Of a stretch of 64,000 bases of DNA, positions 11,901-64,000 are shown one piece after another. Position 1 is the stretch's first letter. Every line of letters starts with the position of its first letter. The notes beneath the pieces are model-generated. The model was not told the DNA's origin. It worked only from the letters and a program-made list of their open reading frames with translations, and searched no databases. Origin of the DNA: Basidiobolus meristosporus CBS 931.73 (lineage: Eukaryota > Fungi > Basidiobolomycota). The position numbers and the translations under genes were made by a program. Location of the stretch: positions 27,854 through 91,853 of the forward strand of contig MCFE01000340.1 in the NCBI GenBank assembly GCA_002104905.1, read 5' to 3'.

Positions 11901-12688
11901 CGTACCAACTTCGGGTGAGCAATCGAGTTGGGGTCATGGCGATGAATTAGAGTGGAAAAGGCGACGCCATCCTTCCAGGATTCATGAAAATCCTCTACCC
12001 GGGGTCCAATTTCGCCATAGTTGGCGAGTTGGCTTTGAACCCACCGCATAAGCAGATCTTTGGTATCCATTCTGGCGGCGTTCTGCACCTGTTGATGAAT
12101 GGGTTAGTAAGGTTAACCGCACGACACCATCACTACTGAATGAATCCCAGTTCCCCTTACATTTTCTACATCTCCAGTACAGTGGCCGAATCCAGTTTCC
12201 GCTGGGTTAATCGGTCTCTCGTCGGCGATTTGCTGAATTTGAAATTTGAGAATTAACTGCCAAATAAGTTCAAGTAGGTGGGTGATATTCCCCTCTTCAA
12301 TATCCTTGCTGTTCAAGCAGGAAAGTGGCTCCCCCAACGTCTTTTCTAAAAAAAGTAGAGCGGTCTCTACGTTGGAACGGCCTTGGGTGGGGGAAGATAC
12401 ATCCTCAACCTTGGGAAGTGGCTGCTTAGAGAGAACCTCCAACAGCTTGAGCAAGCGTTCCCCGTCTCTAAAGCCCGTCTCTATTGAGGCAATATGGTCC
12501 TCTTTCAATGCTAGCTGGAAATTGATCCATTTGGTGAACGTTTTTCTTTGAATCTCCTCATACGTGGAGCTGAGAGTCAGGAGTTTGTCCGAGAATTTCG
12601 GCGGGGCACAATGAGTTTTCGTGCCGAGAGGTGGATTGGTGGATAGGCAAAATGAAGAAACGCTTCCTCTAAGTGTGGTCTGGGACAT
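5966..12688 (-). CDS. Spectraplakin-like cytolinker: two calponin-homology domains, a long helical/spectrin-like rod and a C-terminal GAR (GAS2) domain, about 2170 aa
   Basis: CH1 'EEIQRKTFTKWIN...LIWQLILKFQI', CH2 'LMRWVQ...FHESWKDGVAFSTLIH...PDERSIMTYVSQF', GAR 'CYCRLL...VMVRVGGGWAELSRFLSEH'. Exons 12688-12161, 12088-6321, 6251-6241 (11 nt) and 6180-5966 splice in frame. Confidence 0.9.
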
Positions 12689-13210
12689 GGAAACGCTCGG
12701 TTGAGGTCTTTATTTGAAAATATATGCACAGCGGTCAGACAAATTAGAAATAGTATAAGGTATAAAGGAAGAAATCTACAAGGGAAAACTATGGTCGCCT
12801 CTAACAAGAACCCACTTAACCCTCCAGCCAGCTTCAAAGTCGAGCTCTTGATAGAGACGGCGGCCTCCTTGTTCCCATCCATCCAATAAGGGAGTGGTCA
12901 TTGCTATTCAAGAATTTAATTCATTAACCAGCATGCATGAATATGACTGCATCTTTCCATATGAATGCCATGCTAAATTGGTTCAATCCGCACAACAATC
13001 AAAACTCAGAATGCTGCGAATCCACTCTCCTGCTTCCCCCTATACATCTGGATTTCCTCACCCGAATGACTTGACATGGATCTTCATATCACGAAGAATT
13101 CGCACCATTGAATCAATCCTAAGTACTGCATGTAGCAGAAATTGATCCAATTTATTCCGCTTTGGTCGGCGCGCCATTCCGGAATATTAACTCCCCGAAA
13201 AATTCGCGCC

Positions 13211-22423: not shown

Positions 22424-25400
22424 GTGCGGAAGAAGAAGCATCGACATGATGCTTCTAGAGAGGAGGCAAAGGAACCTGTAGTAGAGGTTCTGTCAAAAGG
22501 AAAGAGCGCGGAATTAGGTGAAGAAGTACGGAATGAACCTTGGGAAGAAGTATTAAAGCGAACAAAGAACGCTAGCACATCTTCCCATGGCCTATTCCCC
22601 ATAATGAAGGTACTAGAGCAAACCAAGGCAACCCTCCCAATAACCAATTTACTAGGACTGGCCCCGGCTCTAGTCAAGGAACGGATAGAGGGATTGAAGG
22701 AGATAACAACCCTCCATGTCAACCAGACGGTCCTGCAAAAACCAAATAAAGGTACATACGTAAAGGTACGTATAGAGAATAAGGAGATTCTCGCCCTTAT
22801 TGACACAGGATCCTCTACGTTGATCATGTCAGAGTCATTAGCAAAACGTCTAAAACTAAATATAGTCCCCAACGACACCATTTGAGTACGGCTAGCAAAT
22901 GACCAACTGGATACAACGGTAGGTGTGGTGCCTAATTGCCCCATTTGGCTAGGTAACTTGATAATACGCCAAGATGTTGTGGTCCTACCCGTCGCAGCCA
23001 ACAACTTACTCATTGGCAAGAGTTGGTTTATCCAACATAAGATGGATATACTTTACAGTGCATCTGAACTCAGGTGGGATACCGAGAGTATCCCACTGAT
23101 TCATATCACCGATGAGAGCGAGGCGCGTAGCAACAGTGTGACAATCGAAGAGGTGGAACCGTTGCAGTCTCCGATCATCACACAAAAGGTGATAAAAATA
23201 CCACCCGCCAGTGAGACGGTGATCTCATTAGAAACACCAATAGCTTATTCAACGAGCGGAAGAATGATAACCGCAGCAAAAGCATCCGAGCAACTGGAAG
23301 GAATCTCAATCCCTAAAGTATGGATACCACCGAAATTTGAAACGCAAAGCCTGAAATGCTTAGTGGTTAACAACGGGCAACACACGGTGACATTGCCTAG
23401 AGGAGTGCCATTGTTAAACTTAGAGGAAGTCGACGGAAACGACCAAGGACCACCTTCAAACGAAGAACCAGAAGAAGAACTCCCCAAACTAGATGTGGAC
23501 CCCGGTCTACCGCCTACGTTACGAGACAAATTCCTAGAAGGAATACATCCGCTTGCCCGAGTATTCTCTAAGAACCAAGTAATTGGTCATATACCTGGGG
23601 TATATCACCAAATCCACCTTGCCGACAAATACCCCATCAAGCAAAAAGCCTATAGGAATTCGAAAATTGACACAGACTATATCAAAGAGACGATTGAAAC
23701 TTTATTAAAAGACGACATCATTACAGAGAGCCAGTCTCTGTGGGCCTCCCGCGTAGTGATAGTCCCAAAGAAAGACGGAAAGCAACGCTTTTGCATCGAC
23801 TACCGGAAATTGAACGCCGTCACCCGGAAGGACGTGTATCCGCTACCGCAAATAGACGACCTCTTGGACAGATTAATCGGAGCTAAATATTTTAGCTCTC
23901 TTGACTTAATCTCCGGGTATTGGCAAGTAGAAGTAGCCCCGGAAGATCGACCCAAAACCGCTTTTATAACATTGTTTGGATTATACGAATGGAACCGACT
24001 ACCCTTTGGCTTGTGCAATGCCCCCGCTACATTCCAAAGGATGATCAACAAGGTGCTAGGAAATCTACGATGGGAATGCGCTCTTGTGTATCTGGACGAC
24101 ATCACGATATATTCACCCAATGTAGAAGAACATATACACGACGTGCAACGTATCCTGACAGCCCTCCTCAAGAACCAACTCAAACTACATCCCAAGAAGT
24201 GCCATTTCCTGTATACAAAATTGTTGTTCCTGGGCCACGAGATCTCGGCAGATGGAATATACCCATCTACGTCACTCCTGAAAGCCGTTCAAAATGCACC
24301 TGCACCAAAGGACATTAATGCAGTGTTGGGATTCCTAGGATTAGCCGGCTACTATCACCGCTTTGTCAAAAACTTTGCGACGATAGCAGCCCCCCTATAC
24401 GAATTGACGCAAAAGGGCCAGTGTTTTGTATGGTCGGAGCCTCAAAAGAGAGCATTCGATCAGCTGAAACATTCCCTGACGTCACCGCCAGTGTTACGAT
24501 TTCCCAATTGGGATACGAGATTTTTTATTAACTGTGATGGAAGCCTCACCGGTATAGGCGCCGTACTGGGACAATACCACCAACCCGGCAAATTCCACCC
24601 GATTGGTTACGTGAGCTGTTTGCTAAACAAACACAAACGCCACTACCCCGTTACCGAGATAGAATGTCTGGCTGTTGTTTATTCAATTAAACAATTCCAT
24701 ACATACATACATGGTCGCCAATTCACGATAGTAACGGACCACAGCGCACTGGTCTGGCTGATGAAAACTAAAGACTTTACTGGCCAATTAGCACGTTGGG
24801 CCCTACGACTACAGCAATACGACTTTGAAATAATTCACTGCGCTGGCAAGAAACACCAGGACGCAGACTTCCTCAGTCGCTATCCCGTTTGCCAAATACG
24901 TGTCAGTGATGAGTACGAGGACGTAATCTGCTTTAAAAAGAAAGGGAGGTATCCCGAACACGTTGTTACAAACAAACAGAAGAGAGAATTTCAAAGGAAA
25001 TGGTGTCAGTACAAAGTACAAGAAAATCGACTATGGTTCCTCCAAGGACAGTCCAGAGCCGAGGTACCCCCACTAGCAGCCCGTGAAGAAATCATACGAG
25101 AAAGACATATGTCATTAGGACACGCTAACCCCCTAACGACCTATAAGATGTTAAGAAAAACGTTTTATTGGCAAAAAATGATGACCAACGTTACGAATAC
25201 GTTACGAAGATGCACCACTTGCGAAAGATTCAACCAGAGTCAGAAGATAGGGACAACCGCACCAATACCGGTTGACCTGCCCTTCCACCAAGTAGGGATT
25301 GACTTTGTTGGCCCCTTTATGAAAACAAAGAAAGGAGAACGATACATAATAATTGCTACAGATTATTTCTCAAAGTGGGTAGAAGCCCAAGCCGTCCGCA

Positions 25401-26144
25401 ATAAAGATCAGAAGACAACCGCCCGATTCATTCTAGAACACCTCATCTGCCGACACGGATATCCTCAGATACTCCTGTCCAACAATGGTGGTTCCTTCCT
25501 GAACAGACACCGTGGCCCACCTGTGCAAAATGATGGGCGTGAAACAAGTCTTCACGGCCGCGTATCACCCCCAGACTAACGGATTAACCGAGAGGATGAA
25601 CCAGACGTGTTGCCGCATACTGGAGAAGCTTCACTGGGAACTTCCCCAATCATGGGCCAAGCTGCTCCCACTGACACTCCTAGCAATGCGCACCACACCA
25701 AATAAAACGACGGGTTTCTCCCCATATGAAATCCTATATGGACGAAGACCCAAGTGGCAGGAGGAAGCTGGATTAACGATGGAAGGTGTCCCCCTGACGA
25801 CACATAACGACTATATAGAAAGGTTGATACACCGTATCGCCCACCTATACATAAAAGTATTCGAAAATGTCGACAAGCACCTTCCCCCTCCACCCAAAAA
25901 TGAGAAACTAACGAGACAAAAGTGGAAACCAGGCGATAAGGTGTGGTACAACCAAACCGTTGCAGGCCTCAAGTTCCGCCCACGATTTACACCCCAATGG
26001 ATTGGCCCATGCACCGTTATCAGTTCGGACCACGGACCAAAGTACACCATCACCCTGAATAATAAGACAATCAGCAACGTAGCGCCAGCCCATCTGAAAC
26101 CGTTTCATGATGATCCACCAATCATCACTGAGACCAAAGTGTGA
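22424..26144 (+). pseudogene. Ty3 pol (PR-RT-RH-INT) with one premature TGA and one frameshift
   Basis: ORFs 22424-22885, 22925-25579 and 25512-26144 are colinear pieces of one pol. The stop falls in 'I*VRLAN' and the frameshift near 25505 is in the integrase core. Confidence 0.9.
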
Positions 26145-26273
26145 TTAAACGATTATCAGGACAAGGATAGAGGAAGACACGGGATACATTCGAAGTTTAT
26201 TAGAGGAGATTTTAGTCGATATAGGTACAAATAATATGCGCAAGGGAGTTCGCCCAAAGGGGAGAACAAAAGA

Positions 26274-27173
26274 ATGCATATGGAAAGCGCCAAAGGAAAC
26301 AGTTCACCCGAAACTGGCGATACCCCTCCCACTAGCGAGAACCAAGATGATATTGAAAACAAAACCGACCTGCAAGTGTTAAGAGATATGGTACGAGCGT
26401 TACGTACGACAAGAGCCACCTATGAAGAGTTGTTTGCCGGAGCAGTCACGCTAATACAAGACACAATCAGAGAGGGACGAGACAAGTTACCCACGCCGAT
26501 ACGAAGCATGGAGATACTACCCAAGAAGACCGTGTACCACCTAAGAGGAGGTTCCTTGATCATTAAGGAGAAGGACGCCGCGCTGATTCCCGTATCCATA
26601 CTGGACACAGTCAGACAGAAGACACAAGGAATCAACTGTCGCGCCCTCACGAGACCTCGAGAGCCCCCCTGTTTTGTTGCATACTTGCCATTAATAGGTA
26701 CCACGGTTGTTGAGGTATACGCAGACCTGGTACGAGCTGCAAGAGCACCAGAAGTAGAACTCCCGATCGAAGGACTCCTCCGAGAAATTTGCGAACATCT
26801 CGAACCACATTTCCAAGAAGGAACCATCTTAGAGAAGATACGCGAACGGATTAAATACACCGGCCAGTTAACCCATGCGATCCACCGAGTTGCTGTGTTA
26901 CAACTATTACAGTGGTTTACCATAGGACAACTCAGGAATCAGTACAAAGTCCAACTCCAAGAAGCCGAAAGAAACCGCCGCGGATTCTGTAGAAACCATG
27001 AGGCGAGTACGAAAGCGCCTCGATCGCGCCACAGTTTCTACGGAAGAACTACAATACATCTCGGAAGAAGCAAAAACTCGTTATTGACAACGGGAGACTG
27101 CCGACTGAGTGTACGCCCTCTTCAAAAGGTCCCCCGCCGTCATATTGAACACAAAAAGGACAAGCCCCGATAA
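26274..27173 (+). CDS. Additional sense ORF between integrase and the 3' LTR, function unknown
   Basis: 299-codon ATG-initiated ORF inside the LTR boundaries. No signal peptide or transmembrane stretch is apparent, and the last ~55 codons may be frameshifted. Confidence 0.6.
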   Translation: MHMESAKGNSSPETGDTPPTSENQDDIENKTDLQVLRDMVRALRTTRATYEELFAGAVTLIQDTIREGRDKLPTPIRSMEILPKKTVYHLRGGSLIIKEKDAALIPVSILDTVRQKTQGINCRALTRPREPPCFVAYLPLIGTTVVEVYADLVRAARAPEVELPIEGLLREICEHLEPHFQEGTILEKIRERIKYTGQLTHAIHRVAVLQLLQWFTIGQLRNQYKVQLQEAERNRRGFCRNHEASTKAPRSRHSFYGRTTIHLGRSKNSLLTTGDCRLSVRPLQKVPRRHIEHKKDKPR

Positions 27174-36049: not shown

Positions 36050-38393
36050 TCAAGAGTTCAGTCTCTGCATGGTACTTTCAATGTCTTTCAAGATCCCCAG
36101 GTACCTAAAGCACTGGGCCCATTGCGCTTTTAGTTTGTCCATGGCACTGTAGTTGATGTCAAGGCACTGCTTGGCCGTTGTGCTGATTCGTTGATCTTTC
36201 GAGAACATATTCTTAACATGAATCCCGGCCGAGATGTATGTGATTAATGGTATGCTAGAGTGTACAAAGTACTCGGGTGTGGCTTGGATCTTGCTAAGGA
36301 TTTCGGTGATTCCGTTGGCGGAGGATATACAGCGATCGAAGGAAGAATTGGCAAATGTAAGGGACACCGGGAAGGTCGGGCCCGAGTCGGTACATCCAAT
36401 GTTGGATCGATGCAAGGTGATTAGGGCTGCGTAATACATCAGCCGTATCCATACAGCAAATCTTCCGTTGAGCCCGGGTGGCAAGGGATCGCCCGGGCCA
36501 AACTGAAACTTGGTGGGCAACGAAATATTCCATGAAACCAACGCGGCATCCAGAATGGCGAATTCGGCGTGCAAACTGGAGGGAGATCCACGGGATAACT
36601 TCAGCCGGTTTTGGAATTGGTATACACGCCCCATAATGGTAGTCAGGGTTACGAGATAGGCCAGGCCGCCTGGTGAGGATGAGCCAGGATCCGGATGGTA
36701 ATGGCTGTCCATTGCAGACGCCTGCTCACTACCAAGCTCCCAAGCGCGATCGTCGGAAGGAAGGATAACTTCGCATTCGTTCTCATCAATCACAGTTTGC
36801 CGGCCTGTTCCAATGGATATGATCCGCTCTAAGGCGTACAGAGACCACCATATCCTTCGGCATGTCTCCTTCTCCATCCAGCTGAATTCTTGGAAAACAT
36901 CGATGTCCGTCGCCTTCTCGTCCACGCGGTTCATGCCTATTTCTTGTGCCATCCTTTGAATGCCTCGTTAGCCACCGGCAAAAACACCTCCAGTCATGGA
37001 GAATCACTTACCTCGTCGCCATCCCTGGTTCCAAGGAAAGAACGATCAAAGAAACCTGCGTTTAGTGGCGATTCGTAGGAGAGCTAGAAGAAACAGGTCA
37101 CCTACCGGAATACAGCCAACCTCCGGACCCATGGCCACTGCCATACGCGTGAAGCGCCAGCAAAAATAGTGCTTGAACGTTGGAGATGGTGTGATCGTCG
37201 CAATACTGTCCCATGATTGATTTGGCCCTATTCGCAAAATAATCCCCGGCGGCAAAAGTATGCTTCGAATCAAGATTCCCGGGGTTGACATACCGAGCGG
37301 CAACTGCGTAGACGCAGTTTAGCAACAACTCCGATTGTCTTCCGCTTTCAAGATCCCGCATGAATTTCACCTGGTTCACAATTGGGTATTGGGGGTACAC
37401 CAGGTCAAAGTAGGCATTGATCAACCGCTCGGAGATCTCCGGATACGCTAGAGGCCTTGTAGGGCCTGCATCATATGGGTTGTTGCTGGTTGGCGTGTAT
37501 CCTTCGTCTTTAATGAATGTCCGCACCCGGTTATCGCTCACCCACGAGCGGGTGACAAGATTCACGAGAGTTTCAAAATTATCGCCGGTTGACACTGTGG
37601 CCTGCGGTATGTAGGGGTTGGAGTTGGTACTTGACGACAATACGCCAACCAGAACACTTTGCTTCTGGAGGGGCGCCTCGTTTCCATTCGAGTTGCCGTA
37701 GTGTTCGTTGTGAAGAATGGTGCCGCTGGCGTATCCAGCATTGGCTGGGTGAACTGAAGGACTGGTGGCGCCCAGTTTGGGGGAAACGGGCTCCGTCCGG
37801 GAGGGGTACTCCATATCCATCTCCCTCGAATATTGGCTAGGTGTATGGTCGTTGATGACTGTGGCAAGATATGATGAAGTAGATACAGATGAGTTTGTTT
37901 GAGGGGGGGCGTTTGGGGGTTGTGATTGAGTTTGAACTTGAACTTGGGCGGCTGTGGTTGGCGGTGACCTAGAACTAGAAGCCTCCGGGGACTCTGATCT
38001 GCCACTCCCTTCGGAATCAATATCTTGCATATCATATTCGGCCTTGCCCTCCATTTCGCTCGCTCCCTCTCCTTCGTTTGGCTTTAAGGGCTCTAGCAAT
38101 TTTTCCATCATATCCAGGCGTTTTTCTAGCTTCTCGATGTACCCTTGCCGAGGGCCACGTTTGTTGGTGCTCGGCACATAAGTACACTCAATGTTACGTC
38201 TAGCACAGTTGGCGCACGCTGGTTTACCTCCATCGCAACGCACCTTTTTCTTACGACAGCCTTCGCAAGCTTGGGTGAGTCTTTTTCTCTTAGTTAGCTT
38301 TGAAAAGTCGGTGACTTGGGGACTTGGGAAAGGGTTAATGTGGTTTAAACGGTTCATTTTCTCACCATGATAAGGGGTTTCCCCGGAGAACAT
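36050..38393 (-). CDS. Zn(II)2Cys6 transcription factor with fungal-specific middle homology domain
   Basis: 'ACEGCRKKKVRCDGGKPACANCARRNIECTY' and 'WLYSGMATRMAQEIGMNR...RRIWWSLYALER'. Exons 38393 (or 38357)-37106, 37024-37012 (13 nt) and 36953-36050. Confidence 0.93.
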
Positions 38394-51599: not shown

Positions 51600-52560
51600 T
51601 AAATTGCAACAAGAAATTTGGTTAGGAAAGAATGCTGATCACGGAATAAGATGTAAGTGACTAAATTAGCATGAATATTTTGGTGACAACTTAATAATAC
51701 AACACTCCCACTCTACATAATATTCATGAGTAATAAATACATATTGTGAGTGTGCAATCTGTAATAAAGCAAATAAAATTTAACTGTGTTGCATACTGGA
51801 CTGATATATTATCCAATGATATATGCATTTGTGCTCTACTTAATTGAACAAGTAAGTTGGGATTCAAAGTGCATACCTACTTAATAGTATGCCTAAAAAT
51901 CAGAATGATCTGATCTAAAATACTAGTTATCATCTTCAATTGATTGCATAGGCTTGAATAATAACCTGGGTGTGGTTGTTAGATGATAATAGTAATAGAT
52001 AGTCTCAGGGCTCTCCAATGCTTGGTATTTAAGCAAAATTGACCTAATTTTGCTTAAGTTAAGGGTTTGTTATTTATGGCAGATCTTGTTGTAAGAGTCT
52101 TGGAGATATTGAAAGTGAGTGGGAGAACAAGTAGATTATGTGGTTTTCACTTTATGATTAATTGAATGTAAAAGTAGTATTTATACCCTTACCTAGTCTT
52201 GGTATTACAGACAAGTAGAACAGGTTAAGGAAGGTCCCAAGAACATGTGTGCAGAGTTTGGGGCTGTTTGGACAACTTTGAGATTTTTCATTTGCTGGGT
52301 AGCTGGTATTTTGGTGAAAATATTCTAAGTAAATCCCAACAAGGAATTTGGTCAGTATTCCCAAGGATTTGAAGGTAATGAACTAAGAAACTAAATTAGG
52401 TGAATATTTAGGTGGAATTACAAATTTTTACAATACTCCCACTCAGCTAAATGCTCATACTGACAAGTCCTAATTTTGACCAAAGATATTCAAGCTTGTC
52501 TCTTGCTAATGGCTTGGTAAATATGTCAGCAATCATATCATCTGAAGGACATAAAGCCTA
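51600..52560 (-). mobile_element. Decayed Ty1/copia RT-RNase H remnants
   Basis: 'PSDDMIADIFTKPLARDKL' (about 52490-52550) matches the copia RNase H end, and 'LGILTKFL.GI' resembles copia RT. A ~130-bp block is duplicated at about 51498 and 52228. Confidence 0.5.
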
Positions 52561-52599
52561 AGCTAACTAAGTTATTCTCTATAGCTTCATGTAAGAATC

Positions 52600-52989
52600 A
52601 AAGCTCATCAGGGGTAAATATAGAATTCAGGGGTTTTGGGGGAAGTACAAATTGTAGATGTTTCTGATCAATATAATCCAAGACTGGAACCCAGCCTGGG
52701 ATTAGGTGTAGTAGCAAAGGTGTGTGGACTTGTAAGTAGCTCTGCCACATAGATCTTAGATGGTCCTGTGCCAGTAGTCTTGTTTTCTCAGCTTTTTGAA
52801 GTTTTGAAGCAAGCTCTGTTACTACAGCAGAGCCAAGCAGGGTGTGCCAGCAAGAAGATTTTCAAGAGGAGTTAGATTTAAGCCATTGTTTGATAGAGGG
52901 GTTATGTGCTTTCTGAAGTTTCACTAGGAAGGAAGCACAGAGATAGACCATTTGGATTTGGTATGAGTAGAACCCAAAGGCTCCATTAG
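52600..52989 (-). mobile_element. Telomeric array unit A2: fragment of family A ORF2 C-terminus
   Basis: Colinear with 56829-57220, with substitutions that include CpG losses. Ends at CTCCATTAGT followed by telomere-like TAGGGTTAGG. Confidence 0.9.
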
Positions 52990-53420
52990 TTAGGGTTAGG
53001 GGGAGGAAAGTCACCAAGTGGTGAAATCTTTATTTACTTATGACAAGTATCTAAAGAAGCCAAGTTAATCTGAAGTTATTCCTAGAAAGCTAGGTCTGAG
53101 AGATATCTTCCTGGTAAGCCAGGTCTGAGAGTTGAGAAGCTGAGTGGTACTATATTTCCTAGTTAGCTAAGTCTGAGAGTGGTTTCCTGGAAAGCTAGGC
53201 ATGAGAAGTGAGAATCTGAATATATCTGAACTAAGTTATACTGGTTTGCAGTTGCTGAATTGTGACCAGAATGGCCAGTGGACTGGGGGAACTGAGAGGA
53301 ATTTCTGGGCAATCACTGGCCAAATTTACTAGGCAAATCTGGCCAATTAGCATTTCCAGGATTTCAGCCAATCAGAGCCTGTACTTTGGGTTAGGGGGGC
53401 AGTCACTCAGGGGAAGGAAA
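52990..53420 (-). mobile_element. Telomeric array unit D1: non-coding, non-autonomous unit with the shared 3' module
   Basis: Begins TTAGGGTTAGGGGGAGGAAAGTCACCAAGTGGTGAAATCTTTATTT. It has internal AGCTAGGTCTGAGAG-like subrepeats and no long ORF, and it is homologous to 54312-54537. Confidence 0.8.
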
Positions 53421-54311
53421 GGGTTAGGGGAGGGAAAGTCACCAAGGTAGGTGAAATCTTTATTTGATTGCAGACAAGTCTAACTACAAATAAAGAAGCC
53501 AGCTGGGAATAGAAGATTCCCAAAGTAAACACTAAGTTGAATATGAATAAATCTAAGCTAAAGTTAAGGCAGTATCCCAGAGTACACTGGAGTTCAGGTA
53601 CATGGGGGAGTGAAGTAGATAAGCTTGAGAGATATAATAATCTTTGAGGAAGTGGGTAACAGCAGGTGAAGGGGAGCTTTTGATAAGTGAAGTGAATCTT
53701 GAGAGCAGAGATTCCTCTAATGAGAAGGTCTTGTAAACTGGAGAATCAGGAAACTCTTTAAAGGCATGGTCAGTAGGTTCAAGTAAAACTGGTCAGAGAC
53801 ATTTTGAGAGAACACTTTAGCAATACTTTTGTCAAGTACTACCTCCAGAGTGTGATTGTTGATAAATCTCATGTTAACAATCTTCGATAAATTGTAACCT
53901 TGTTGCTTGAGATACATCCTATGCTCAGATATAGGAATGAACTCCACATTGGCAAAGTAGCAGACAGCCCAGTCAGTAGCAGGAGGCAAATCAGAAGTAG
54001 CAGGAAACTTTCTTTTAGTCTTGGGAGGAGCAGTAGGATGTCTTGAGGAAGCAGGAACAGACTTTTTGACAGCTTCAGAGTAGGAAGAGTGAGCGGGAGC
54101 AGATGATTCTTGGGGAGTCTTGTTGACAGGAACAGCTGGCAGAGAGACAATAGATTCTTGCAGATCAGAGAAGGCAGAAAACAGCTTTTGAACTTGTTTC
54201 TTGAGTAAAGCATTTTCAGCTTCAACAAGTGCAAGCCTTTCCTCAAGGAAGGAAATCTGAAGGGAATGGAGTGAAGGCATAAGAAATAAGAAGAAGAGGG
54301 TTGGATGGGGT
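53421..54311 (-). mobile_element. Telomeric array unit E1: ORF1-only element (ORF 54280-53717, continuing in a shifted frame)
   Basis: Coiled-coil N-terminus plus 'WAVCYFANV...SKIVNMRF...LEVVLD', homologous to A1 ORF1 'WSLLYFANV...SKIVNLAW...LEMIVD'. It has no RT and carries the shared 3' module at 53421-53465. Confidence 0.8.
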
Positions 54312-54537
54312 GGGTTAGGGGAGGAAAGTCACCAAGTGTGAAATCTTATACTTATGACAAGTATCTAAGAAGCAAGTAATCTGAAGTTATCTAGAAAGCT
54401 AGGTCTGAGAGATATCTTCCTGGTAAGCCAGGTATGAGAGTTGAGAGGCTGAGTGGTACTGTATTCTAGTTAGCTAGGTCTGAGAGAGGTTCTGGAAGCA
54501 GGCTGAGAAGTGAGAATGATATATCTGAGCTTAGTTA
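54312..54537 (-). mobile_element. Telomeric array unit D2: shorter copy of D
   Basis: Aligns to 52990-53230 with many single-base deletions. Confidence 0.8.
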
Positions 54538-56672
54538 TAGGGTTAGGGGGGAGACAGTCACCAACAGGTGAAATCTTTATTTCAGTTGAAACAAAGAAGC
54601 CAGCGCTACTGTTGTAGCTTTGATACAAGAGTGTGTAGCTGAGGGGAATTTGTAGGTAAGTTAATAAGAAGTGATGATAGTTCTTCAGTGCTCAAGACAC
54701 TGTTCAGTGGGAAGGGGGGTAGCAAGAGAGGTAAGAATGACTTGTGAACAACATTAATGAGGGGAATGTGATAAGGATTGATATTCATCATAAAGGGAGT
54801 GTGCTGCTGCAGATATTGCTGCCAAAGGTCTGTCAAGTACTTCAGGTAGGCCAGCTTGGGTTTTTCTGACTGCAGAATAATATGCAGCAAACTTCTTGAC
54901 TTCAGGATCTCCAAGTATAGTTCTCCAGCAGGAGTCAGGTGTTGTGTGGTGTGTTCTCTTCCAGGCCTTAATCAGTGGGTTGTTGCAGTTGTGAAGTCTG
55001 AGGTATAATCTGGTTCTAAGGTAGAGAAGTCTGATCTCTATAGGGCATAAACCCAAAAGCACCAAGAATAGCATGTCTGTAGGGGCATTCAGGCAAATGA
55101 GGCACCAAGGAGGTAATGCACCATACTGCAAACTTGTCAAGCTTAGTGCAGTCTCTAGAAGTAAGAGAGAGAAGTGGTAAGCCAAATTCCAGGACAGGGA
55201 AGACAAACTGCTTGAGTAGAAGGAGGCAGCTGGGAGCTGAAGTTGTAGGAGGAGTAACAGCCAGTAGCTTGTGGAGTGCCTGTCTTGCCAGGATAATTCT
55301 CTTCTTCAGGTGTGCTCCAGAGTCTAGTCCAGTAGGAAGGAAAGGAAAGCCAAGATATGTAGCAGAAACCTGAGCAGGTAGAGTGGAGTTCTCCAAGTTG
55401 ATGGGAGAGCCCAAAGGTACTGTCTTTGCAATGGAAAGCTGGAGATTATTCTTCTGCAGATACTGGTGGATGGTCTGGGAGTCTTGTTGCACATTGGAGG
55501 AGGATATTCTGATGTCATCAGCAAAGAGAGTAACCAGGCAGTCAGCTGAGAGTCTTGGGAAATCATTCAGGAAGATGGCAAACAGTATAGGACCAAGCAC
55601 AGAGCCTTGAACCACTCCATTAGGAACTGAGAACACAGCTGATTGCTCACTTGGGTGCAGAATTCTTGCTTGTGGATCCAGAAACAGAGACCTGACAAGG
55701 AGGGTGAGAGAGGTACTGGAGAAGCATTGCAACTTGGACCAAAGCAGATTTCTGTCAACTGAATCAAAGGCCTTAGTAATATCAAACAGAACAGAGGGAT
55801 ACTTGCACTGGAGAGAGTGATCTTGGCTAAGTATGACTGCATATTCCAAGGAGAGGCCAGGAACAAAGCCAAACTGTGCAGGATGAAACTTGAGGGAGTC
55901 AGAGTAGAGCTCCTGAGCAAGCAGAAGCTCAAACACCTTTCTGCAGGTGGGCAGCAGAGATATTGGCCTGTAGGAGCTAGGATCCAGGTGCTTTCCTTTA
56001 CCCTTGTACAGTGGCAGAACATTTGCAAAGGACCATTCCTCAGGAGTAGAAAGCTGGGCTGAGCATTGCTGAAACAGTGGAAGCAGAAGTGCAGACATGG
56101 CCTTGGTACTAGTCTTCAGAAGCTCATAAGAGATTGTGTCCACACCTGGAGCAGTAGAGTTGGGAAGCCTCTTGAGCACATTATGGATTCTCCTTTGATC
56201 AAGTGCAAGTGGGATGGGCAGAGTCTTGAAGTCAGGATGAAAGCCAGGAGTTGAGTACTGCTTGTAGAGAAGAAGATGTTAGCCAGCTGTTCTGTTGAAG
56301 GTAACTTCCTGGAAGAGGGCCTCATTGCCCTGTAGAGTCTTGATACTGTTCTTGTTATAGAGTTGGAAGATTGCAGAGGCAAGAACTCATAATATGATCC
56401 CAGAGCTGAGTATAGAGTGTGGTAATTGCCTTGAGTGGTGTATTGCTGTCAGGAGGAGTTCTCTGTTTTTGGGTTAGGAAACTCAGTAGCTTTGTTGCAG
56501 GCTGAAACAATGGATTCCATTTTCTTGAGTAACAGCAGTAGTCTTGATGCAGTGAGAGGAGGCAGACACAAATCAGATGCTTCACAAGAGCAGCATAGTG
56601 AGATCATCAGAGAAGTAGCAAATGCAAGCTTCAAGTAGTTCCAAAGTCTCTCTGATCTGTAGCTTGTAGGTG
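54538..56672 (-). mobile_element. Telomeric array unit B2: 5'-truncated family B non-LTR element (linker + RT, disrupted)
   Basis: RT motifs 'SYRPISLL', 'DITKAFDSV', 'GVVQGSVLGP' and 'LFADD'. Near-identical to B1 but with two 1-nt insertions, and it extends about 450 bp further 5'. Confidence 0.93.
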
Positions 56673-59600
56673 TTAGGGGAGGGAAAGTCACCAAGTTGGT
56701 GAAATCTTTATTTGAGTTAAGAACTAATCTAAGTACAAATAAAGAAGCCAATTAAGAGGTCTAGAACCTCTCTAATAAGTAATCTAATTTATGTTTTGTT
56801 TCATCTCTAATGTTTGTTTCAATAAAGTAAAGCTCATCAGGGGTAAATATAAAATTCAGGGGTTTTGGGGGAAGTACAAATTGTAGATGTTTCTGATCAA
56901 TATAATCCAAGACTGGAACCCAGCCTGGGATTAGGTGTAGTAGGAAAGGTGTGTGGACTTGTAAGTAGCTCTGCCACATAGATCTTAGATGGTCCTGAGC
57001 CAGTAGTCTTGGTTTCTCAGCTTTTTGAAGTTTTGAAGCAAGCTCTGTTACTACAGCAGAGCCAACCAGGGTGTGCCAGCAAGAAGATTTCAGGGAGGAG
57101 TTAGATTGAAGCCATTGTTTGATGGAGGGGTTATGTGATTTCTGAAGTTTGACTAGGAAGGAAGCCCGGAGATAGATCATTCGGATTTGGTATGGGTAGA
57201 ACCCAAAGGCTCCATTAGTTGCATGGATATAGGGAGATACTGGAAGATAAGGTACCAAGGATCTGATACACTGATGGAGAAATTTATCCAGGCGGTGAAG
57301 TTCTCTGGAGGTTAGGGGTATAATGTGGAGACCAAATTCAAGTACTGGCAGCACATACTGCTTCAGAAGTATAGGGATCTTTTGAATTGGAGTGTCTGGA
57401 GTGACTACTACCAGAAGCTTTTTGAGAGCCTGTTGGGCAAGACGGATCCTATTATTCAGGTGGAGCTTTGAGTCAATCCCATGTTGACAAAACGGCAGAC
57501 CTAGATATATTGCAGTTTGTTGTGGCAGAATGCTAGTGTTCTGTATAGTTGTAGTGCATCCAATTGGGACTGTCTTGGAAATTGAGAGTGAGAGGTTGTT
57601 GGCAGCCAAGTACTTCTCAATGATGGCAGTGTCTGCTATGGGATTAGGAGTAGCAATCTTGATATCATCCGCATAGAGAGTTAGTAGTGGATAGGGAGAG
57701 TCTGGTGAGGGGCCTTTTGGAAATAAAGGAAAGTCATGTAGGAATATCACAAATAGTAAGGGACCTAGTACAGATCCTTGGACTACTCCATTTGGAACCT
57801 CATAAGTCTCTGATGTACAACTTGGATGCAAAATTTTGGCTGAGTTCTCACAAAATAGAGAACGTACAAGAAGGGTCATTGGTAGTGTGGTAACTGCTAA
57901 TAGCTTTCTCCAAAGCAGAGCTCTGTCCACAGAGTCAAAGGCTTTAGTAATGTCAAACAGAATGGTTGGCAATGAGAATTGAAGTGAATGATCATGGCTT
58001 AGCACTACAGCCATATCCAAGGAGAGTTTGGGCAAGAAGCCAAACTGAGAAGGATGGAATGGATATAGTTGAGATTGCAAGGATCTTGCTATCATAAGCT
58101 CAAAGATTTTCCGGCAGGTTGGTAGGAGTGAAACTGGCCGGTAAGAACCTGGGAGTGAGTGTTTCCCCTTCCCTTTGTATAAGGGTATTACATTTGCCTG
58201 TGACCAGGCCTTTGGGGTAGTCAATTGTTGGGCACAGATAGAGTAGAATGGGAGAAGTAAGTGACTCATTTTGGAGTAGCACACCCGGAGTAGATCGTAG
58301 GTAATCAAGTCATGTCCAGGTGCAGTATTTGCAGGAAGCTTCTTTAAAATTTTCTCCAGAAGCTTTGCTGAAACCAAAATTGGAGATGTTGGACTGCTAG
58401 ATATGTTACCAGTATGGTAGAAAGGAGGAGTGGGATGCACGGTTGAATCAAAGAATATAGGGGCCAGTTTGTCTGGTGATGGTATACTCCTTGCTTGGGG
58501 TCTCATGGCTTTGTATACTCTTGATATGGACCTTGTGGTGGCATTCATATTTACTAAGGGCAAGGTATCCATGATATGAGCCCATAATCTAGTATGCTCA
58601 GTGATCTGTAGTGACTTGGAGTAGGAGATTGCGCTTTCCAGGAGGTTCTGTGTTTTTGGGTTAGGGAAACATAGGTAGCTGGAATTTAAGGCAGAAATGA
58701 TGGATTTCCATTTAAGTTGGTTTGCAGATGGCTTTTGGTAGGACTTGGTGGGCAGGGCCAGACAGCCAGTGATTATGATGAAATGCTGGTAAAATAGCCA
58801 TAATGCATTTATATCATCACAAATCCATGCAGGTAAGCTGGGAAATGCATATTCTGTAAGCAAGGATAGGTAGTTGGCAAAGTCCTGTGTCTGTGATACT
58901 GAAGCTTTGGCTGGCAGGATTGTAAATGGCTGAAGAAGGGTGCCAATTGGTAGGGTTTTTCTGGCAGAAATGATAATATGTATTGGCTTGTGATCAGATT
59001 TCTCTAGTGAACCACAGCTGATATCCTCTGGAATGCTTGTAACCTGGTGGATGTACTGTAAGGCAGCTGGAGTAGCTGTTACCCAGTCAACACAACGTTG
59101 AGCTTGCTGAGTGTTTACAGTGACCAGATGGTTTTGTCGGAGGAACTTTGTAAAGTGCTCCTCTCTGGTTCTAAGTCTGGATGAAATAGTGGTGATATTT
59201 TCAGGGTGGGGAATATTTATATCTCCCACTACCATACAAGGGATTGATGAGCTGTTAATGAATTCTGATGTGGCCAAGAAAATTGCCAGTGTTATGGAGT
59301 TAGACAGAGATGGAGGGAGATAGATAATAATGGCTACTATAGTTGGAAGTGTTAGAGCATAGCAGTAATACTCATAGATGATGGATACATTTGCTGAGGG
59401 TGCAAGCTTAGAAGATGAAAGAGCAACAAGTGCCATTGAGTGAGCTGGAAATCTTGGGTGAGCAGATGAATATGCATTCAGTCTAGAGGGAAGTTTTGGC
59501 AACTTAACATCAATTAGTAGGAGCAAGGAATATTCCTTTTTCAGTAAGTTTTCTAATTCAGCTACAGTTGGAGTGATGGAGTTGCAATTGAGTAAGAGTA

Positions 59601-60731
59601 TGTTTTGTAGTCAGGCAGACTCTGAGGTTGCCTGTTCCTGCTGAAACTCTTGCACTGCCCTTTGTAAATTTCCAGAATTATTCCACAACTCTTCAAATGG
59701 AGCTTGTGTAATGTCTTTCAGGATTCTAATTGCTTCCTCTTTCAAGAAGTAGGCCACATCATAGGTTGGAGCCTGTTTCTTAATGGCAGCAAAGAAAGCC
59801 ATAATTGCCATGTGAGCTGGGGCTTGTTGAATATTCCTGGCTCAGTGTCCATTGACTCTGGTGGAATGATTGTGAATTTGGTAGACACCCAGTTTAGATT
59901 TTTTGCCAGATACTTAGTCAATGCAGTGGAGAAGTTTCTGTCCACAATCATTTCTAGGATCTTTCCTCTTCTCCAAGCTAGGTTAACAATTTTTGAAGTG
60001 TCAATATTTAGAGAGCGGAATGTATGTCTGATGTTTGATATAGTAGTCCATGGAACATTGGCAAAGTATAGCAAGGACCAATTCTGGAGCTGAGGTAAGT
60101 TTGCTGGAGGCTTATAGGTAGACTTCCTGGCAGGTTGTGTGGTAGGCTTTAGTGTTTCCAAGGTAGCAAGTTGTGGTTGAGACTTTTTGGAATTACGTAT
60201 GACTTTGGAAAGAATTCTGCCAGCAACTGTGTCAGGAATGTTAGTACTCATTGATGGTGCAGGGCCTGGCTCCTGGTACTGCTTTTGTAGAATACTTGAG
60301 TATGTCTCTTTTTGTTTTCCTTTATCCAATGTGCTATGCCTTGGAATGGGATTTTGGGGAATAGAGACTTCAGGTATCAACTCTGGGGTCTGGTGATTGT
60401 CCAACATTGTTGCTTGAGCTTCCAGCTTTTCCTCTAAGATTTGAACTCTCTGCTTAAGCTCATCATTTGACGCTATAAGTGTTGCATTGTTTGGAGCCAG
60501 GTCAGGTGTTGAGTTATGAAGGCAGGTTGAGCAGCGTTCTAACTCCTTTGTTTGGTCATCCAACTTTTCTTCTAAGGTTTGAACCCTCAATTTGAGTGAA
60601 CCATTTGAGGTTAGAAGCTCCAAGTTATCAGCCTGCAACTTCTTTAGATCCCTAAATATCTCAAATATCTGTGCCTGCAAGTCTTTAGCAGTGATATTTC
60701 TGATAAGTACTATTTCCTCTAGGGGTTCTTC
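56673..60731 (-). mobile_element. Telomeric array unit A1: near-full-length two-ORF non-LTR retrotransposon (ORF1; APE endonuclease-RT)
   Basis: ORF1 spans about 60731-59611 with one frameshift and is open to the junction with no ATG. The ORF2 frame 59610-56761 has APE motifs NCNS, IYLPP, GDIN, VDW and SDHKPI, and RT motifs DITKAFDSV, QGSVLGP and LYADD. Confidence 0.95.
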
Positions 60732-62403
60732 TTAGGGTTAGGGGGGGGAGACAGTCACCAACAGGTGAAATATTTATTTCAGTTGAAACAAAGAAGTCAG
60801 CGCTACTGTTGTAGCTTTGATACAAGAGTGTGTAGCTGAGGGGAATTTGTAGGTAAGTTAATAAGAAGTGATGATAGTTCTTCAGTGCTCAAGACACTGT
60901 TCAGTGGGAAGGGGGGTAGCAAGAGAGGTAAGAATGACTTGTGAACAACATTAATGAGGGGAATGTGATAAGGATTGATATTCATCATAAAGGGAGTGTG
61001 CTGCTGCAGATATTGCTGCCAAAGGTCTGTCAAGTACTTCAGGTAGGCCAGCTTGGGTTTTTCTGACTGCAGAATAAATTCAGCAAACTTCTTGACTTCA
61101 GGATCTCCAAGTATAGTTCTCCAGCAGGAGCCAGGTGTTGTGTGGTGTGTTCTCTTCCAGGCCTTAATCAGTGGGTTGTTGCAGTTGTGAAGTCTGAGGT
61201 ATAATCTGGTTCTAAGGTAGAGAAGTCTGATCTTAGAGGGCATAAACCCAAAAGCACCAAGAATAGCATGTCTGTAGGGGCATTCAGGCAAATGAGGCAC
61301 CAAGGAGGTAATGCACCATACTGCAAACTTGTCAAGCTTAGTGCAGTCTCTAGAAGTAAGAGAGAGAAGTAGTAAGCCAAATTCCAGGACAGGGAAGACA
61401 AACTGCTTGAGTATAAGAAGGCAGCTGGGAGCTGAAGCTGTAGGAGGAGTAACAGCCAGTAGCTTGTGGAGTGCCTGTCTTGCCAGGATAATTCTCTTCT
61501 TCAGGTGTGCTCCAGAGTCTAGTCCAGTAGGAAGGAAAGGAAAGCCAAGATATGTAGCGGAAACCTGAGCAGGTAGAGTGGAGTTCTCCAAGTTGATGGG
61601 AGAGCCCAAAGGTACTGTCTTTGCAATGGAAAGCTGGAGATTATTCTTCTGCAGATACTGGTGGATGGTCTGGGAGTCTTGTTGCACATTGGAGGAGGAT
61701 ATTCTGATGTCATCAGCAAAGAGAGTAACCAGGCAGTCAGCTGAGAGTCTTGGGGAATCATTCAGGAAGATGGCAAACAGTATAGGACCAAGCACAGAGC
61801 CTTGAACCACTCCATTAGGAACTGAGAACACAGCTGATTGCTCACTTGGGTGCAGAATTCTTGCTTGTGGATCCAGAAACAAAGACCTGACAAGGAGGGT
61901 GAGAGAGGTACTGGAGAGGCATTGCAACTTGGACCAAAGCAGATTTCTGTCAACTGAATCAAAGGCCTTAGTAATATCAAACAGAACAGAGGGATACTTG
62001 CACTGGAGAGAGTGATCTTGGCTAAGTATGACTGCATATTCCAAGGAGAGGCCAGGAACAAAGCCAAACTGTGCAGGATGAAACTTGAGGGAGTCAGAGT
62101 AGAGCTCCTGAGCAAGCAGAAGCTCAAACACCTTTCTGCAGGTGGGCAGCAGAGATATTGGCCTGTAGGAGCTAGGATCCAGGTGCTTTCCTTTACCCTT
62201 GTACAGTGGCAGAACATTTGCAAAGGACCATTCCTCAGGAGTAGAAAGCTGGGCTGAGCATTGCTGAAACAGTGGAAGCAGAAGTGCAGACATGGCCTTG
62301 GTACTAGTCTTCAGAAGCTCATAAGAGATTGTGTCCACACCTGGAGCAGTAGAGTTGGGAAGCCTCTTGAGCACATTATGGATTCTCCTTTGATCAAGTG
62401 CAC
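60732..62403 (-). mobile_element. Telomeric array unit B1: 5'-truncated family B element with an uninterrupted RT ORF (62374-60803)
   Basis: 523-codon open frame. The 3' module is at 60732-60779, and the unit is truncated at GATCAAGTGCA relative to B2. Confidence 0.95.
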
Positions 62404-63764
62404 TTAGGGTTAGGGGTCTAAATTCTTTTATTGAATCTGATCAAGTATCGTAATACTATTTCAACTTGATTCAAGTTGAAAAGTGCATATTGTATAAAAA
62501 AGATATATCCATAGTAATGTGAAGGTAAAATACTGCTCAAGCTGAGTTGAGTTTTGGAAAGAAATTTGTCAACAAATCAGGCTAGAAAATGAAGTAAAGC
62601 TGGGAGTTATTTGAAAGCAAAGCACTAAGGGAAAGTGTAGAGCTATACTACCACTTCCTGAAAGGCAGGGATCTCACAGGAAGGCAGAAGCTCAGGTCTA
62701 ATTGCAGATATGATGGCAGAAAGTCTCTGGATGAGCTCCCTTTGTTTGTGAAATTGGAACAAAGATTGGGTATCTTTGAACCCAAAGCAGCTCTCTTCAT
62801 GAGAGAAGTAAAAATACCTGCTACAGTAGGGGCACCTGGAACCCAAGCAAAGTGTGTTCATCCTCCACCTTATGGCCTGGAAGGCAAAGAAGGAACTCCT
62901 GATGTAAAGGGATATGTCTGCTCCACTATGGGAATGTCTACTCTCATGAGAAATAAGTCCAACTCTGTCTTTTGAGCTAGTAACTATGGAGATATTCTCC
63001 AGCTTCCTTTTATGCATTGCTACAGAGAGAGGAATAAGCTCTCTAGGTGGCTTGGCACTGTTGGAGGCCAGATAATCTCTATAACCATCAGGAAAGTGTA
63101 TCTTCTTTCTCACCAATGACTTTGGGGTGGCTTGGACTAAGTTGTTAGTAATCTTATTGACTAAGATCTTCAAAGGATTATTGGGTGATGCTTTTGCATA
63201 GTGCTGCCCAAATCTGATACCTAAAGTCTCAAATCTGATTGGCACAGCCTCAATACCAGTCAGACTATGTATAAGCCTCTGATATTGCCTAGAATGGTAG
63301 TCAGAAGCATTGACTACCCAGCCAATAGCTTCTTGCTGCAGAGCTTGTAGCTTGGTAATGAGGTCAGGATCAGCAGCCAAACACATCATAGGAGCAGCAT
63401 ACTCCCAAGATGACCTCACAAAGGCCTTGAATAGCTGTAGCCTAATCAGAGGATGCCATCTGGCCCCTTTGAGCTGTAGGAATCTCAAAGTGGCAGAAGC
63501 CCTTTGAATACACTTTTCAGTGTAAGCTGCCCAAGAAATACCACTTTGACAAGTTGGGAGTCCAAGGTAGCTGTAAGAGGAAGGTTGAGGCAGAAGGGAG
63601 TTATTGAAGGAAATATTCCACTCTGGTGTGGGACCAATGTATGCTGATTTAGCAGTGTTTACCTCCATACCATTGGCAGTACACCATTGGCTGACTTTAC
63701 TCAGCAAACAATTAGCTTCTGAGAGACTCCTAGGCAGCAATTGGATGTCATCAGCAAACAACAG
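62404..63764 (-). mobile_element. Telomeric array unit C1: 5'-truncated family C non-LTR element (RT C-half plus C-terminal CCHC finger)
   Basis: The frame starts 'LLFADDIQL', continues through 'YSYLGL' and ends in 'AIRWRMN...CPYCSRYFYFSHEESC'. Its 3' end in transcript sense is AATAAAAGAATTTAGACCCCTAACCCTAA. Confidence 0.92.
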
Positions 63765-64000
63765 TTAGGGTTAGGGTTAGGGTTAGGGTTAGGGTTAGGG
63801 TTAGGGTTAGGGTTAGGGTTAGGGTTAGGGTTAGGGGTTAGGGTTAGGGTTAGGGTTAGGGTTAGGGTTAGGGTTAGGGTTAGGGTTAGGGTTAGGGTTA
63901 GGGTTAGGGTTAGGGTTAGGGTTAGGGTTAGGGTTAGGGTTAGGGTTAGGGTTAGGGTTAGGGTTAGGGTTAGGGTTAGGGTTAGGGTTAGGGTTAGGGT
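63765..64000 (+). repeat. Telomere, (TTAGGG)n, 39 units with one TTAGGGG variant at 63831
   Basis: Directly visible. The G-rich strand runs to the sequence end, as expected for a right chromosome arm. Confidence 0.98.

Follow-up and report, generated by a model that had tools for sequence, protein, structure and literature searches.

The chromosome end contained in a 64,000-nt stretch of Basidiobolus meristosporus DNA (the window, which comprises the last 64 kb of contig C636 in an 89.5-Mb, 1,366-contig assembly) appears to be built by a guild of telomere-specific retroelements that lack long terminal repeats (non-LTR elements). We favor, with a probability of about 0.6, a reading in which the RNA tail of these elements pairs with the 3′ end of the telomeric G-strand, which then primes reverse transcription. 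The pattern is genome-wide, in that most sampled chromosome ends consist of a one-way stack of truncated units of the long interspersed nuclear element (LINE) type. The guild is an independent telomere-specific lineage of LINEs of the apurinic/apyrimidinic endonuclease (APE) type in an early-diverging fungus. A preliminary description made from the window had proposed that several non-LTR lineages were repeatedly added here in one orientation beside telomerase-type repeats, and this proposal holds both in the window and across the genome.

A BLAST comparison with the window's own units reproduced the head-to-tail series that had been described, namely eight retroelement units between 52594 and 63764, each with its sense strand on the minus strand and each 5′-truncated toward the terminal TTAGGG tract. 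The innermost, A2 (52594–52989, minus strand), is a fragment of LINE family A that spans positions 151–542 from the family 3′ end, is 95.7% identical to unit A1 and lacks the 3′ module by BLAST and by sequence. Two TTAGGG repeats (52990–53001, plus strand), overlapping the A sequence by 3 nt, lead to D1 (53002–53390; 53002–53420 in the BLAST map), a 5′-truncated unit of family D, which resembles a short interspersed nuclear element (SINE) and has the hairpin 3′ module. E1 with its junction (53421–54311; BLAST unit 53430–54312) belongs to family E, which encodes ORF1 only, and contains a 187-aa open reading frame (ORF) at 53717–54280. It is followed by D2 (54312–54537 with junction; BLAST unit 54321–54538), a decayed family D fragment at 89% identity, and by B2 (54538–56672 with junction; BLAST unit 54549–56672), the 3′ 2,124 nt of a family B LINE in which the reverse transcriptase (RT) is present and the frame is broken. 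A TTAGGGG junction opens A1 (56673–60731; BLAST unit 56679–60731), the 3′ 4,053 nt of the ~4.67-kb family A. Its ORF2, comprising APE-like and RT domains, lies at 56761–59610, after an in-frame UGA that ends ORF1; the ORF1 part at 59611–60731 has one frame shift in this copy. Two repeats and a G-run precede B1 (60732–62403; BLAST unit 60744–62403), the 3′ 1,660 nt of family B with an open 523-aa RT frame, and two repeats precede C1 (62404–63764; BLAST unit 62416–63764), a family C LINE cut within the FADD motif of its RT. All these units are on the minus strand. As had been reported, the last unit is capped by telomere repeats, here a (TTAGGG)39 tract at the contig end (63765–64000, plus strand) that runs 5′ to 3′ outward as the G-strand and carries one extra G at 63837.

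Two details of the earlier unit map change. Because A2 has no 3′ module of its own and adjoins an unrelated high-copy repeat, the base of the array at 52594 reflects a rearrangement, not a junction. Within D1 there is an additional junction (TTAGGGGGG) at 53391, followed by a 21-nt piece whose sequence has a degenerate likeness to a B-type module (53391–53420, minus strand); this piece is a possible ninth, ultra-short unit. The seven junctions of one to two TTAGGG-type repeats that had been listed are all found. The (TTAGGG)2 motif has 40 matches in the window and 0 in shuffled sequence; 37 of the 40 lie within 63765–64000 and the internal ones mark the double junctions at 52990, 60732 and 62404, whereas single or 1.5-repeat junctions occur at 53424, 54315, 54543 and 56673. 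On the plus strand, the centromere side of each unit reads one or two TTAGGG, then a G-run, then the module. RT domains (Pfam RVT_1) were detected in A1, B1, B2 and C1, and every RT ORF is on the minus strand; some broken frames may be explicable by PacBio-era indel errors. The absence of poly(A) also stands, with none at any unit 3′ end in the window or at the sampled ends. The array is nearly free of CpG, with an observed/expected ratio of 0.05 versus 0.55–0.84 elsewhere in the window, and its outward strand is G-rich. The repeat directly proximal to the array (51997–52593) is of very high copy number, reaching a word depth of up to 2 million in short-read contigs. It contains an element boundary at 52433 and also borders the terminal tract of telomere repeats at two other ends, L021 and, in inverted orientation, L023.

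Most families have in common a 3′ module that, on the element sense strand, reads AATAAA-GATT-TCACC-loop-GGTGA-(8–9 nt)-C-run-TAACCC, and the 3′ ends of all families consist of a C-run followed by TAACCC(TAA), the reverse complement of the telomere repeat. In folding predictions of the RNA, all hairpin families form stem 2 (UCACC/GGUGA) and the tail stays unpaired. A further predicted helix, stem 1, pairs UCUUUAUUUG with CAAAUAAAGA across AAUAAA. Its closing pair is G:C in families A and E, C:G in B, A:U in F and one relative, and U·G in another relative; as this is one covarying position in an otherwise invariant stem, the support for stem 1 is modest. A search of the whole window against Rfam at gathering thresholds returned no match, hence no hammerhead ribozyme or known RNA family. 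The 3′ end of family C has no UCACC hairpin, yet it carries the same CCCCUAACCCUAA telomere-complement tail.

Our survey covered the window and 29 other ends (a sample of more than 100), two pieces of contig C1 and 20 contigs for module placement, and only real element copies were compared. Family A is represented by at least 40 copies at 96–100% identity, all of which begin at the 3′ end and vary in their 5′ cut point. All 54 family A matches lie near contig ends where the contig extent is known, and each of the 12 copies that we fetched ends 160 nt to 6.5 kb from a contig end. The A/D/E-type 3′ module occurs 802 times, compared with 0 matches for the control, a reversed pattern. For the first 20 contigs of the module list, every module is within 22 kb of a contig end and has the orientation which that end predicts, including one left-end case. 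The placement of family A copies and modules near contig ends runs counter to the possibility, raised in the preliminary description, that the families are mostly internal and free of TTAGGG junctions.

Nor do other ends lack such arrays. More than 100 contig ends carry TTAGGG tracts, and among 17 ends picked solely by their terminal tract, 15 have family A–E units within the last 8 kb; the remaining two are contig C380, which ends in a plain telomere, and another that ends in a different repeat. At the C380 end (L026), the tract directly follows unique DNA of normal CpG content and no retroelement unit lies within 8 kb, so the arrays are common and not obligatory. The array of contig C1 extends over 22.7 kb. 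The five families A–E of the preliminary description are all in the window, and further families occur elsewhere in the genome; at least eight take part.

We considered whether the arrays might be chimeric repeat joins made by the long-read assembler. Tracts of at least five telomere repeats start on the forward strand in 110 cases and on the reverse strand in 3, so the assembler's graph traversal has shaped the contigs, and many array contigs are only 10–20 kb long. This right-end bias is probably a by-product of the assembler walking from a repeat branch to a dead-end tip and not biology. An artefact is nevertheless very improbable, because the same junction grammar recurs in ~30 independent contigs, in short-read contigs of the 2016 runs and in relatives from unrelated samples. 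On 5.9 kb of this array, more than 200 alternative joints are visible in the short-read contigs; their 5′ departure points vary and their arrival is fixed at module starts. Read support for the tandem order, on which the preliminary description had made its case depend, is indirect: the joints are found in the short-read contigs, but these contigs are too short to span units. As a separate observation, the module occurrences divide into 735 on the reverse and 67 on the forward strand, and telomere tracts lie almost solely at right contig ends.

Among 112 modules scored in the window and the 29 other ends, 7 join through the G-run alone, without TTA, and 105 carry a telomere pattern. In a second tally, 98 of 105 junctions carry TA or TTA plus a G-run or more. 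In the 105 with a telomere pattern, the part to the left of the G-run is most often just TTA (26) or TA (12) and never exceeds 26 letters (~5 repeats), whereas terminal tracts on the same contigs measure 130–238 nt (22–40 repeats). The length of the junction tracts is uncorrelated with distance from the terminus (rho = −0.03), which indicates that they were born short and did not shrink. We therefore rejected the idea that internal tracts begin long and then shorten with age. We mapped 54 break points on a longer real copy of their own family and found microhomology between the broken element and the incoming telomere pattern, ranging from 1 to 4 nt. It amounts to at least 1 nt in 44 of the 54 (expected fraction ~0.3; p = 7e-15) and to at least 2 nt in 26 of the 54 (p = 1e-13); ten junctions with terminal tracts are alike in this respect. 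Some modules join non-telomeric sequence directly, and ultra-short units of 25–33 nt occur at other ends.

Under the reading we favor, the UAACCC tail would base-pair over a few nucleotides with the G-strand's 3′ end; this end could belong to a telomere that is nearly exhausted or has a short overhang, to an eroded element or to a just-synthesized cDNA ending in G. The 3′-OH would prime reverse transcription and the cDNA would extend the chromosome outward, with an early stop of synthesis producing the 5′ truncation. The new end would then be capped by telomerase or taken by the next RNA, possibly by template jumping, and template jumping from a just-finished cDNA would also explain the micro-units. 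Repetition of these steps would stack units head to tail in one polarity, so that old units come to lie on the inner side of the array and young ones on the outer side. Similarity to the other copies of a family rises toward the terminus (rho = −0.31, p = 0.009), and in the contig C1 array the proximal units are 92–94% identical and the distal ones 98.8%; judged from these identities, proximal units appear to be older and distal units younger.

The TTA(GGG) at each junction is best explained as copied from RNA, because processive telomerase would leave longer and more variable tracts and because the preceding elements diverge exactly at TTA. The preliminary description had left the presence of TERT as a question; the gene is present, with Telomerase_RBD and TERT_C domains on contig C935. 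Telomerase evidently caps the outermost unit, with microhomology. Given that telomerase is present and caps ends, the elements add to a telomerase-based telomere and do not replace telomerase. The further suggestion of the preliminary description, that the system could stand midway in evolution between upkeep of telomeres by telomerase and by retrotransposons, is speculative.

In the autonomous members of the guild (families A, B and H and the distant family C), a coiled-coil ORF1 is accompanied by an ORF2 carrying an APE-fold domain at its N terminus together with an RT, whose best solved-structure match is L1 ORF2p. Pfam did not place the APE domain of ORF2 above threshold, and a sequence search of ORF2 against the PDB matched the RT and not the endonuclease, so the fold had to be predicted. 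The first ~210 residues of ORF2 adopt a predicted AP-endonuclease-like fold (AlphaFold2 mean predicted local distance difference test (pLDDT) score 83.5) that Foldseek matches to APE1, L1-EN and TRAS1-EN with probability 1.0. No Pfam match or motif for a CCHC plus PD-(D/E)XK restriction-like endonuclease was found at the ORF2 C terminus.

This domain raises an alternative in which the APE-like enzyme nicks the G-strand within duplex TTAGGG, the tail anneals at the nick and target-primed insertion takes place inside the tract, in the style of TRAS/SART and MoTeR. Such an enzyme would be in keeping with the N, Y-P, GD.N, D and SDH motifs, which the domain retains at 40–55% identity across the family, and with the canonical catalytic LAETW motif of family C; moreover, the known endonuclease-bearing telomere-specific LINEs are all thought to act in this way (PMC12857005, PMC10088271). 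In the A/B lineage, however, the catalytic metal-binding Glu is an invariant Asp (LIDV), with the other catalytic residues (N, Y, D, N, D, D and H) kept, and a ~20-aa loop of ordinary APE LINEs is missing from ORF2. Random insertion into a tract of 22–40 repeats should also leave many proximal repeats, whereas the junctions have ~5 at most and mostly 0.5–1, young distal junctions are as short as old ones, and some modules join without TTA or directly to non-telomeric sequence. We therefore regard nicking as possible and distinctly less probable than priming on the chromosome end.

Several points weigh against priming at the end itself. The conservation of the APE-like domain across the family suggests, from sequence comparison, that it is needed, and end-priming alone would need no endonuclease. 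The single repeat at some junctions could be supplied by telomerase, and the RNA 3′ end is deduced from DNA copies alone. The age gradient is modest and derives from pairwise identities. Homeology or duplication may affect many of the sampled ends, so that the junctions are not all independent, and the public short-read contigs do not span units.

Shared arrangements among ends bear on another alternative, in which recombination between ends (by break-induced replication or gene conversion, akin to alternative lengthening of telomeres) accounts for most of the spread of the arrays and retrotransposition is rare or ancient. Ends L008 and L009 have identical terminal junctions, L024, L027 and L033 have the same neighbor order of a full-length B followed by a D, and the genome may be polyploid (PMC3281927). 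Because some junctions are shared between ends, recombination surely copies some arrays. It cannot, however, create many distinct tailed break points, and the data contain dozens of distinct 5′ break points per family and the more than 200 distinct joints on the 5.9-kb reference. Every break point has a freshly templated tail and microhomology, which is not a recombination product, and copies are 98–100% identical with intact ORFs. As the main route of spread, recombination is improbable.

The families differ in coding capacity. Full-length family B measures 4.56 kb and comprises a 523-aa coiled-coil ORF1, one in-frame stop and a 922-aa ORF2, an arrangement that is intact at four ends. Family A (~4.67 kb) is organized likewise, and its ORF1 and ORF2 meet at UGA-CUA. 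In both families, the two ORFs lie in one frame with a conserved single stop between them (window 59605–59613, minus strand; L033, L030, L027 and L020), and this suggests read-through or re-initiation. Family C is a separate LINE, with an RT that matches RVT_1 and is 27% identical to that of B; its LAETW motif retains the Glu. Family E is ~1.02 kb at full length and encodes only an ORF1-like protein, 29–41% identical to the central domain of the A/B ORF1, and family D is SINE-like, ~0.52 kb at full length with a fixed 5′ end and no ORF. These two non-autonomous families share the 3′ module with the autonomous members, whose machinery they presumably use. Families F and X also take part.

Family X is a ~1-kb unit with normal CpG and internal repeats of ~150 nt; its 3′ tail (sense ...CCTAGCCCTTACTATAACACCTACACCC) is telomere-like but degenerate. 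The unit lies inside arrays in the same polarity and with varied truncation (L030:2350–3460; L005:3478–4352; L010, reverse-complemented, ~2260–3500; L022:1528–1580). Some joins that had been taken for base junctions on unique DNA proved to be family X inside arrays, and only L008, perhaps with L020 and L029, remains joined to non-array DNA.

CpG depletion extends through the bodies of the elements. A full-length B (L033:3173–7733) has no CpG from nt 170 to nt 4506 of its 4,560 nt, and seven CpGs cluster in the first 170 nt, the 5′ leader; family E has zero CpG in 1,019 nt. The CpG-free bodies show a TpG+CpA excess of 1.2–1.4. The leaders of full-length copies also contain telomere-complement motifs, CCCTAACCCTAA ~150 nt into B and CCCTAACCC 26 nt into D, the latter after a degenerate hairpin-like stretch (leader loci L033:7575–7733, L036:6700–6738 and L004 ~2200–2302); the motif CCATCCATCCATCC is held in common with the relative L015. 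These motifs may represent tags from the 3′ end of an upstream neighbor, comparable to those in HeT-A promoters, or may seed re-capping.

Among the 1.8 billion cluster representatives of a sequence library, close relatives of the A/B lineage number only five or six, beyond which scores drop to generic APE LINEs of arthropods and Mucorales at 30–37% identity. Relatives with 47% ORF2 identity, from unrelated sequencing runs, differ little in 3′ module and tail and likewise lack CpG. More broadly, relatives with 44–65% ORF2 identity in unrelated public samples show the same module, tail and head-to-tail joins (L013–L019; Logan runs ERR14042384, ERR14042393, ERR14042375, ERR14127404 and ERR14656578; ENA ERZ27274739). 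The contig of one relative ends in an Illumina adapter.

A literature search for Basidiobolus together with telomere, retrotransposon or LINE found no description of such a system, which agrees with the earlier statement that a fungal system of this multi-family composition is undescribed; the described fungal telomeric LINEs in the literature searched belong to the CRE clade only. A review of telomeric elements names SART/TRAS, GilM/GilT, Zepp, MoTeR1, Tx1-1_ACar, Athena and the Drosophila elements as the cases known (PMC10088271). The fungal telomeric LINEs MoTeR1/MoTeR2 of Pyricularia oryzae, FoTeR of Fusarium oxysporum and Cnl1 of Cryptococcus are CRE-clade elements with a C-terminal restriction-like endonuclease. 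Like the Basidiobolus guild, they are confined to chromosome ends with the 5′ side toward the terminus, and they form head-to-tail arrays joined by telomere repeats, lack poly(A) and occur together with telomerase (PMC12857005). They differ in having a single ORF with that C-terminal enzyme, whereas the Basidiobolus elements have ORF1 and an ORF2 with an N-terminal APE fold, and at least eight families occupy one niche in an early-diverging fungal host. MoTeR2 is a non-autonomous partner, comparable to families D and E.

The proposed working of the tail has a counterpart in the Athena and Coprina elements, for which Gladyshev and Arkhipova reportedly proposed in 2007 that reverse-complement telomere repeats at the 3′ end pair with the G-overhang and prime reverse transcription. 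Copies of these elements are 5′-truncated and stacked at chromosome ends with short repeat stretches between them. They have an RT of the Penelope-like element (PLE) type and hammerhead motifs and lack an endonuclease, whereas the Basidiobolus elements combine a LINE-type RT with an APE domain and have no Rfam match in the window. The tail common to Athena and the Basidiobolus guild is thus a case of shared working, not shared descent. A telomeric location is described for endonuclease-deficient Penelope-like elements (PMC8557442).

TRAS/SART and Tx1-1_ACar elements end in poly(A) and sit within long repeat tracts. They are APE-type, telomere-repeat-specific LINEs that reside beside telomerase repeats (TRAS/SART, of the R1 clade, in Bombyx and Tribolium; Tx1-1_ACar in the anole) (PMC10088271), and the TRAS1 endonuclease is among the structural matches of the Basidiobolus ORF2 N terminus. 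The guild differs from TRAS/SART in its templated telomere-complement tail and ~5 or fewer junction repeats, and we set the two apart by the absence of poly(A). HeT-A, TART and TAHRE (HTT) of Drosophila likewise form polar head-to-tail multi-family arrays, with HeT-A encoding Gag only (compare family E), but Drosophila has no telomerase or telomere repeats and its junctions contain poly(A), whereas Basidiobolus has TERT and TTAGGG caps. According to Morrish et al. (2007), mammalian L1 RT is reported to prime on the 3′ end of uncapped chromosomes independently of an endonuclease. That activity at dysfunctional telomeres is experimental and non-specialized, whereas the Basidiobolus elements have a dedicated pairing tail and are restricted to ends. 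The guild belongs to none of the compared families: it is neither CRE-clade, nor PLE, nor R1-clade TRAS/SART, nor a Drosophila HTT array.

The guild combines features that elsewhere occur separately, namely a telomere-complement tail, a LINE/SINE-style shared 3′ module, a Gag-only partner and coexistence with telomerase. Telomere-specific retrotransposons bear on the relationship between telomerase and retroelements and on the repair of chromosome ends. Here the guild occupies most of more than 100 assembled chromosome ends, in a host whose small chromosomes are exceptionally numerous (reportedly about 60 to many hundreds in Basidiobolus; PMC3281927). Because the copies are young and include intact ones, experiments could address the mechanism, both with respect to end-priming versus nicking and with respect to competition or cooperation with telomerase. 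A wider role is conceivable, though rather unlikely, in which the guild acts as a chromosome-healing system, its RNAs, whose tail resembles a telomerase template, priming on any G-ended 3′ end, even that of broken non-telomeric DNA, and restoring an end before telomerase caps the product. If so, the guild could have allowed or stabilized the break-up of the Basidiobolus genome into its small chromosomes, which number 60 to several hundred, and it would represent an independent, APE-LINE-based origin of telomerase-like end extension.

Outside the array, the window contains a Ty3/gypsy pol with RT, RNase H and integrase (22925–27173), followed by a 299-aa ORF without a Pfam match. A pseudouridine synthase encoded at 13142–14893 matches a protein of Basidiobolus meristosporus CBS 931.73 at 100% identity, and a Zn2Cys6 fungal transcription factor is encoded at 36050–38393. 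A single 1,923-aa ORF at 6317–12088 (minus strand) combines calponin-homology, spectrin-repeat and GAS2 domains in a spectraplakin-like architecture that is uncommon in fungi.

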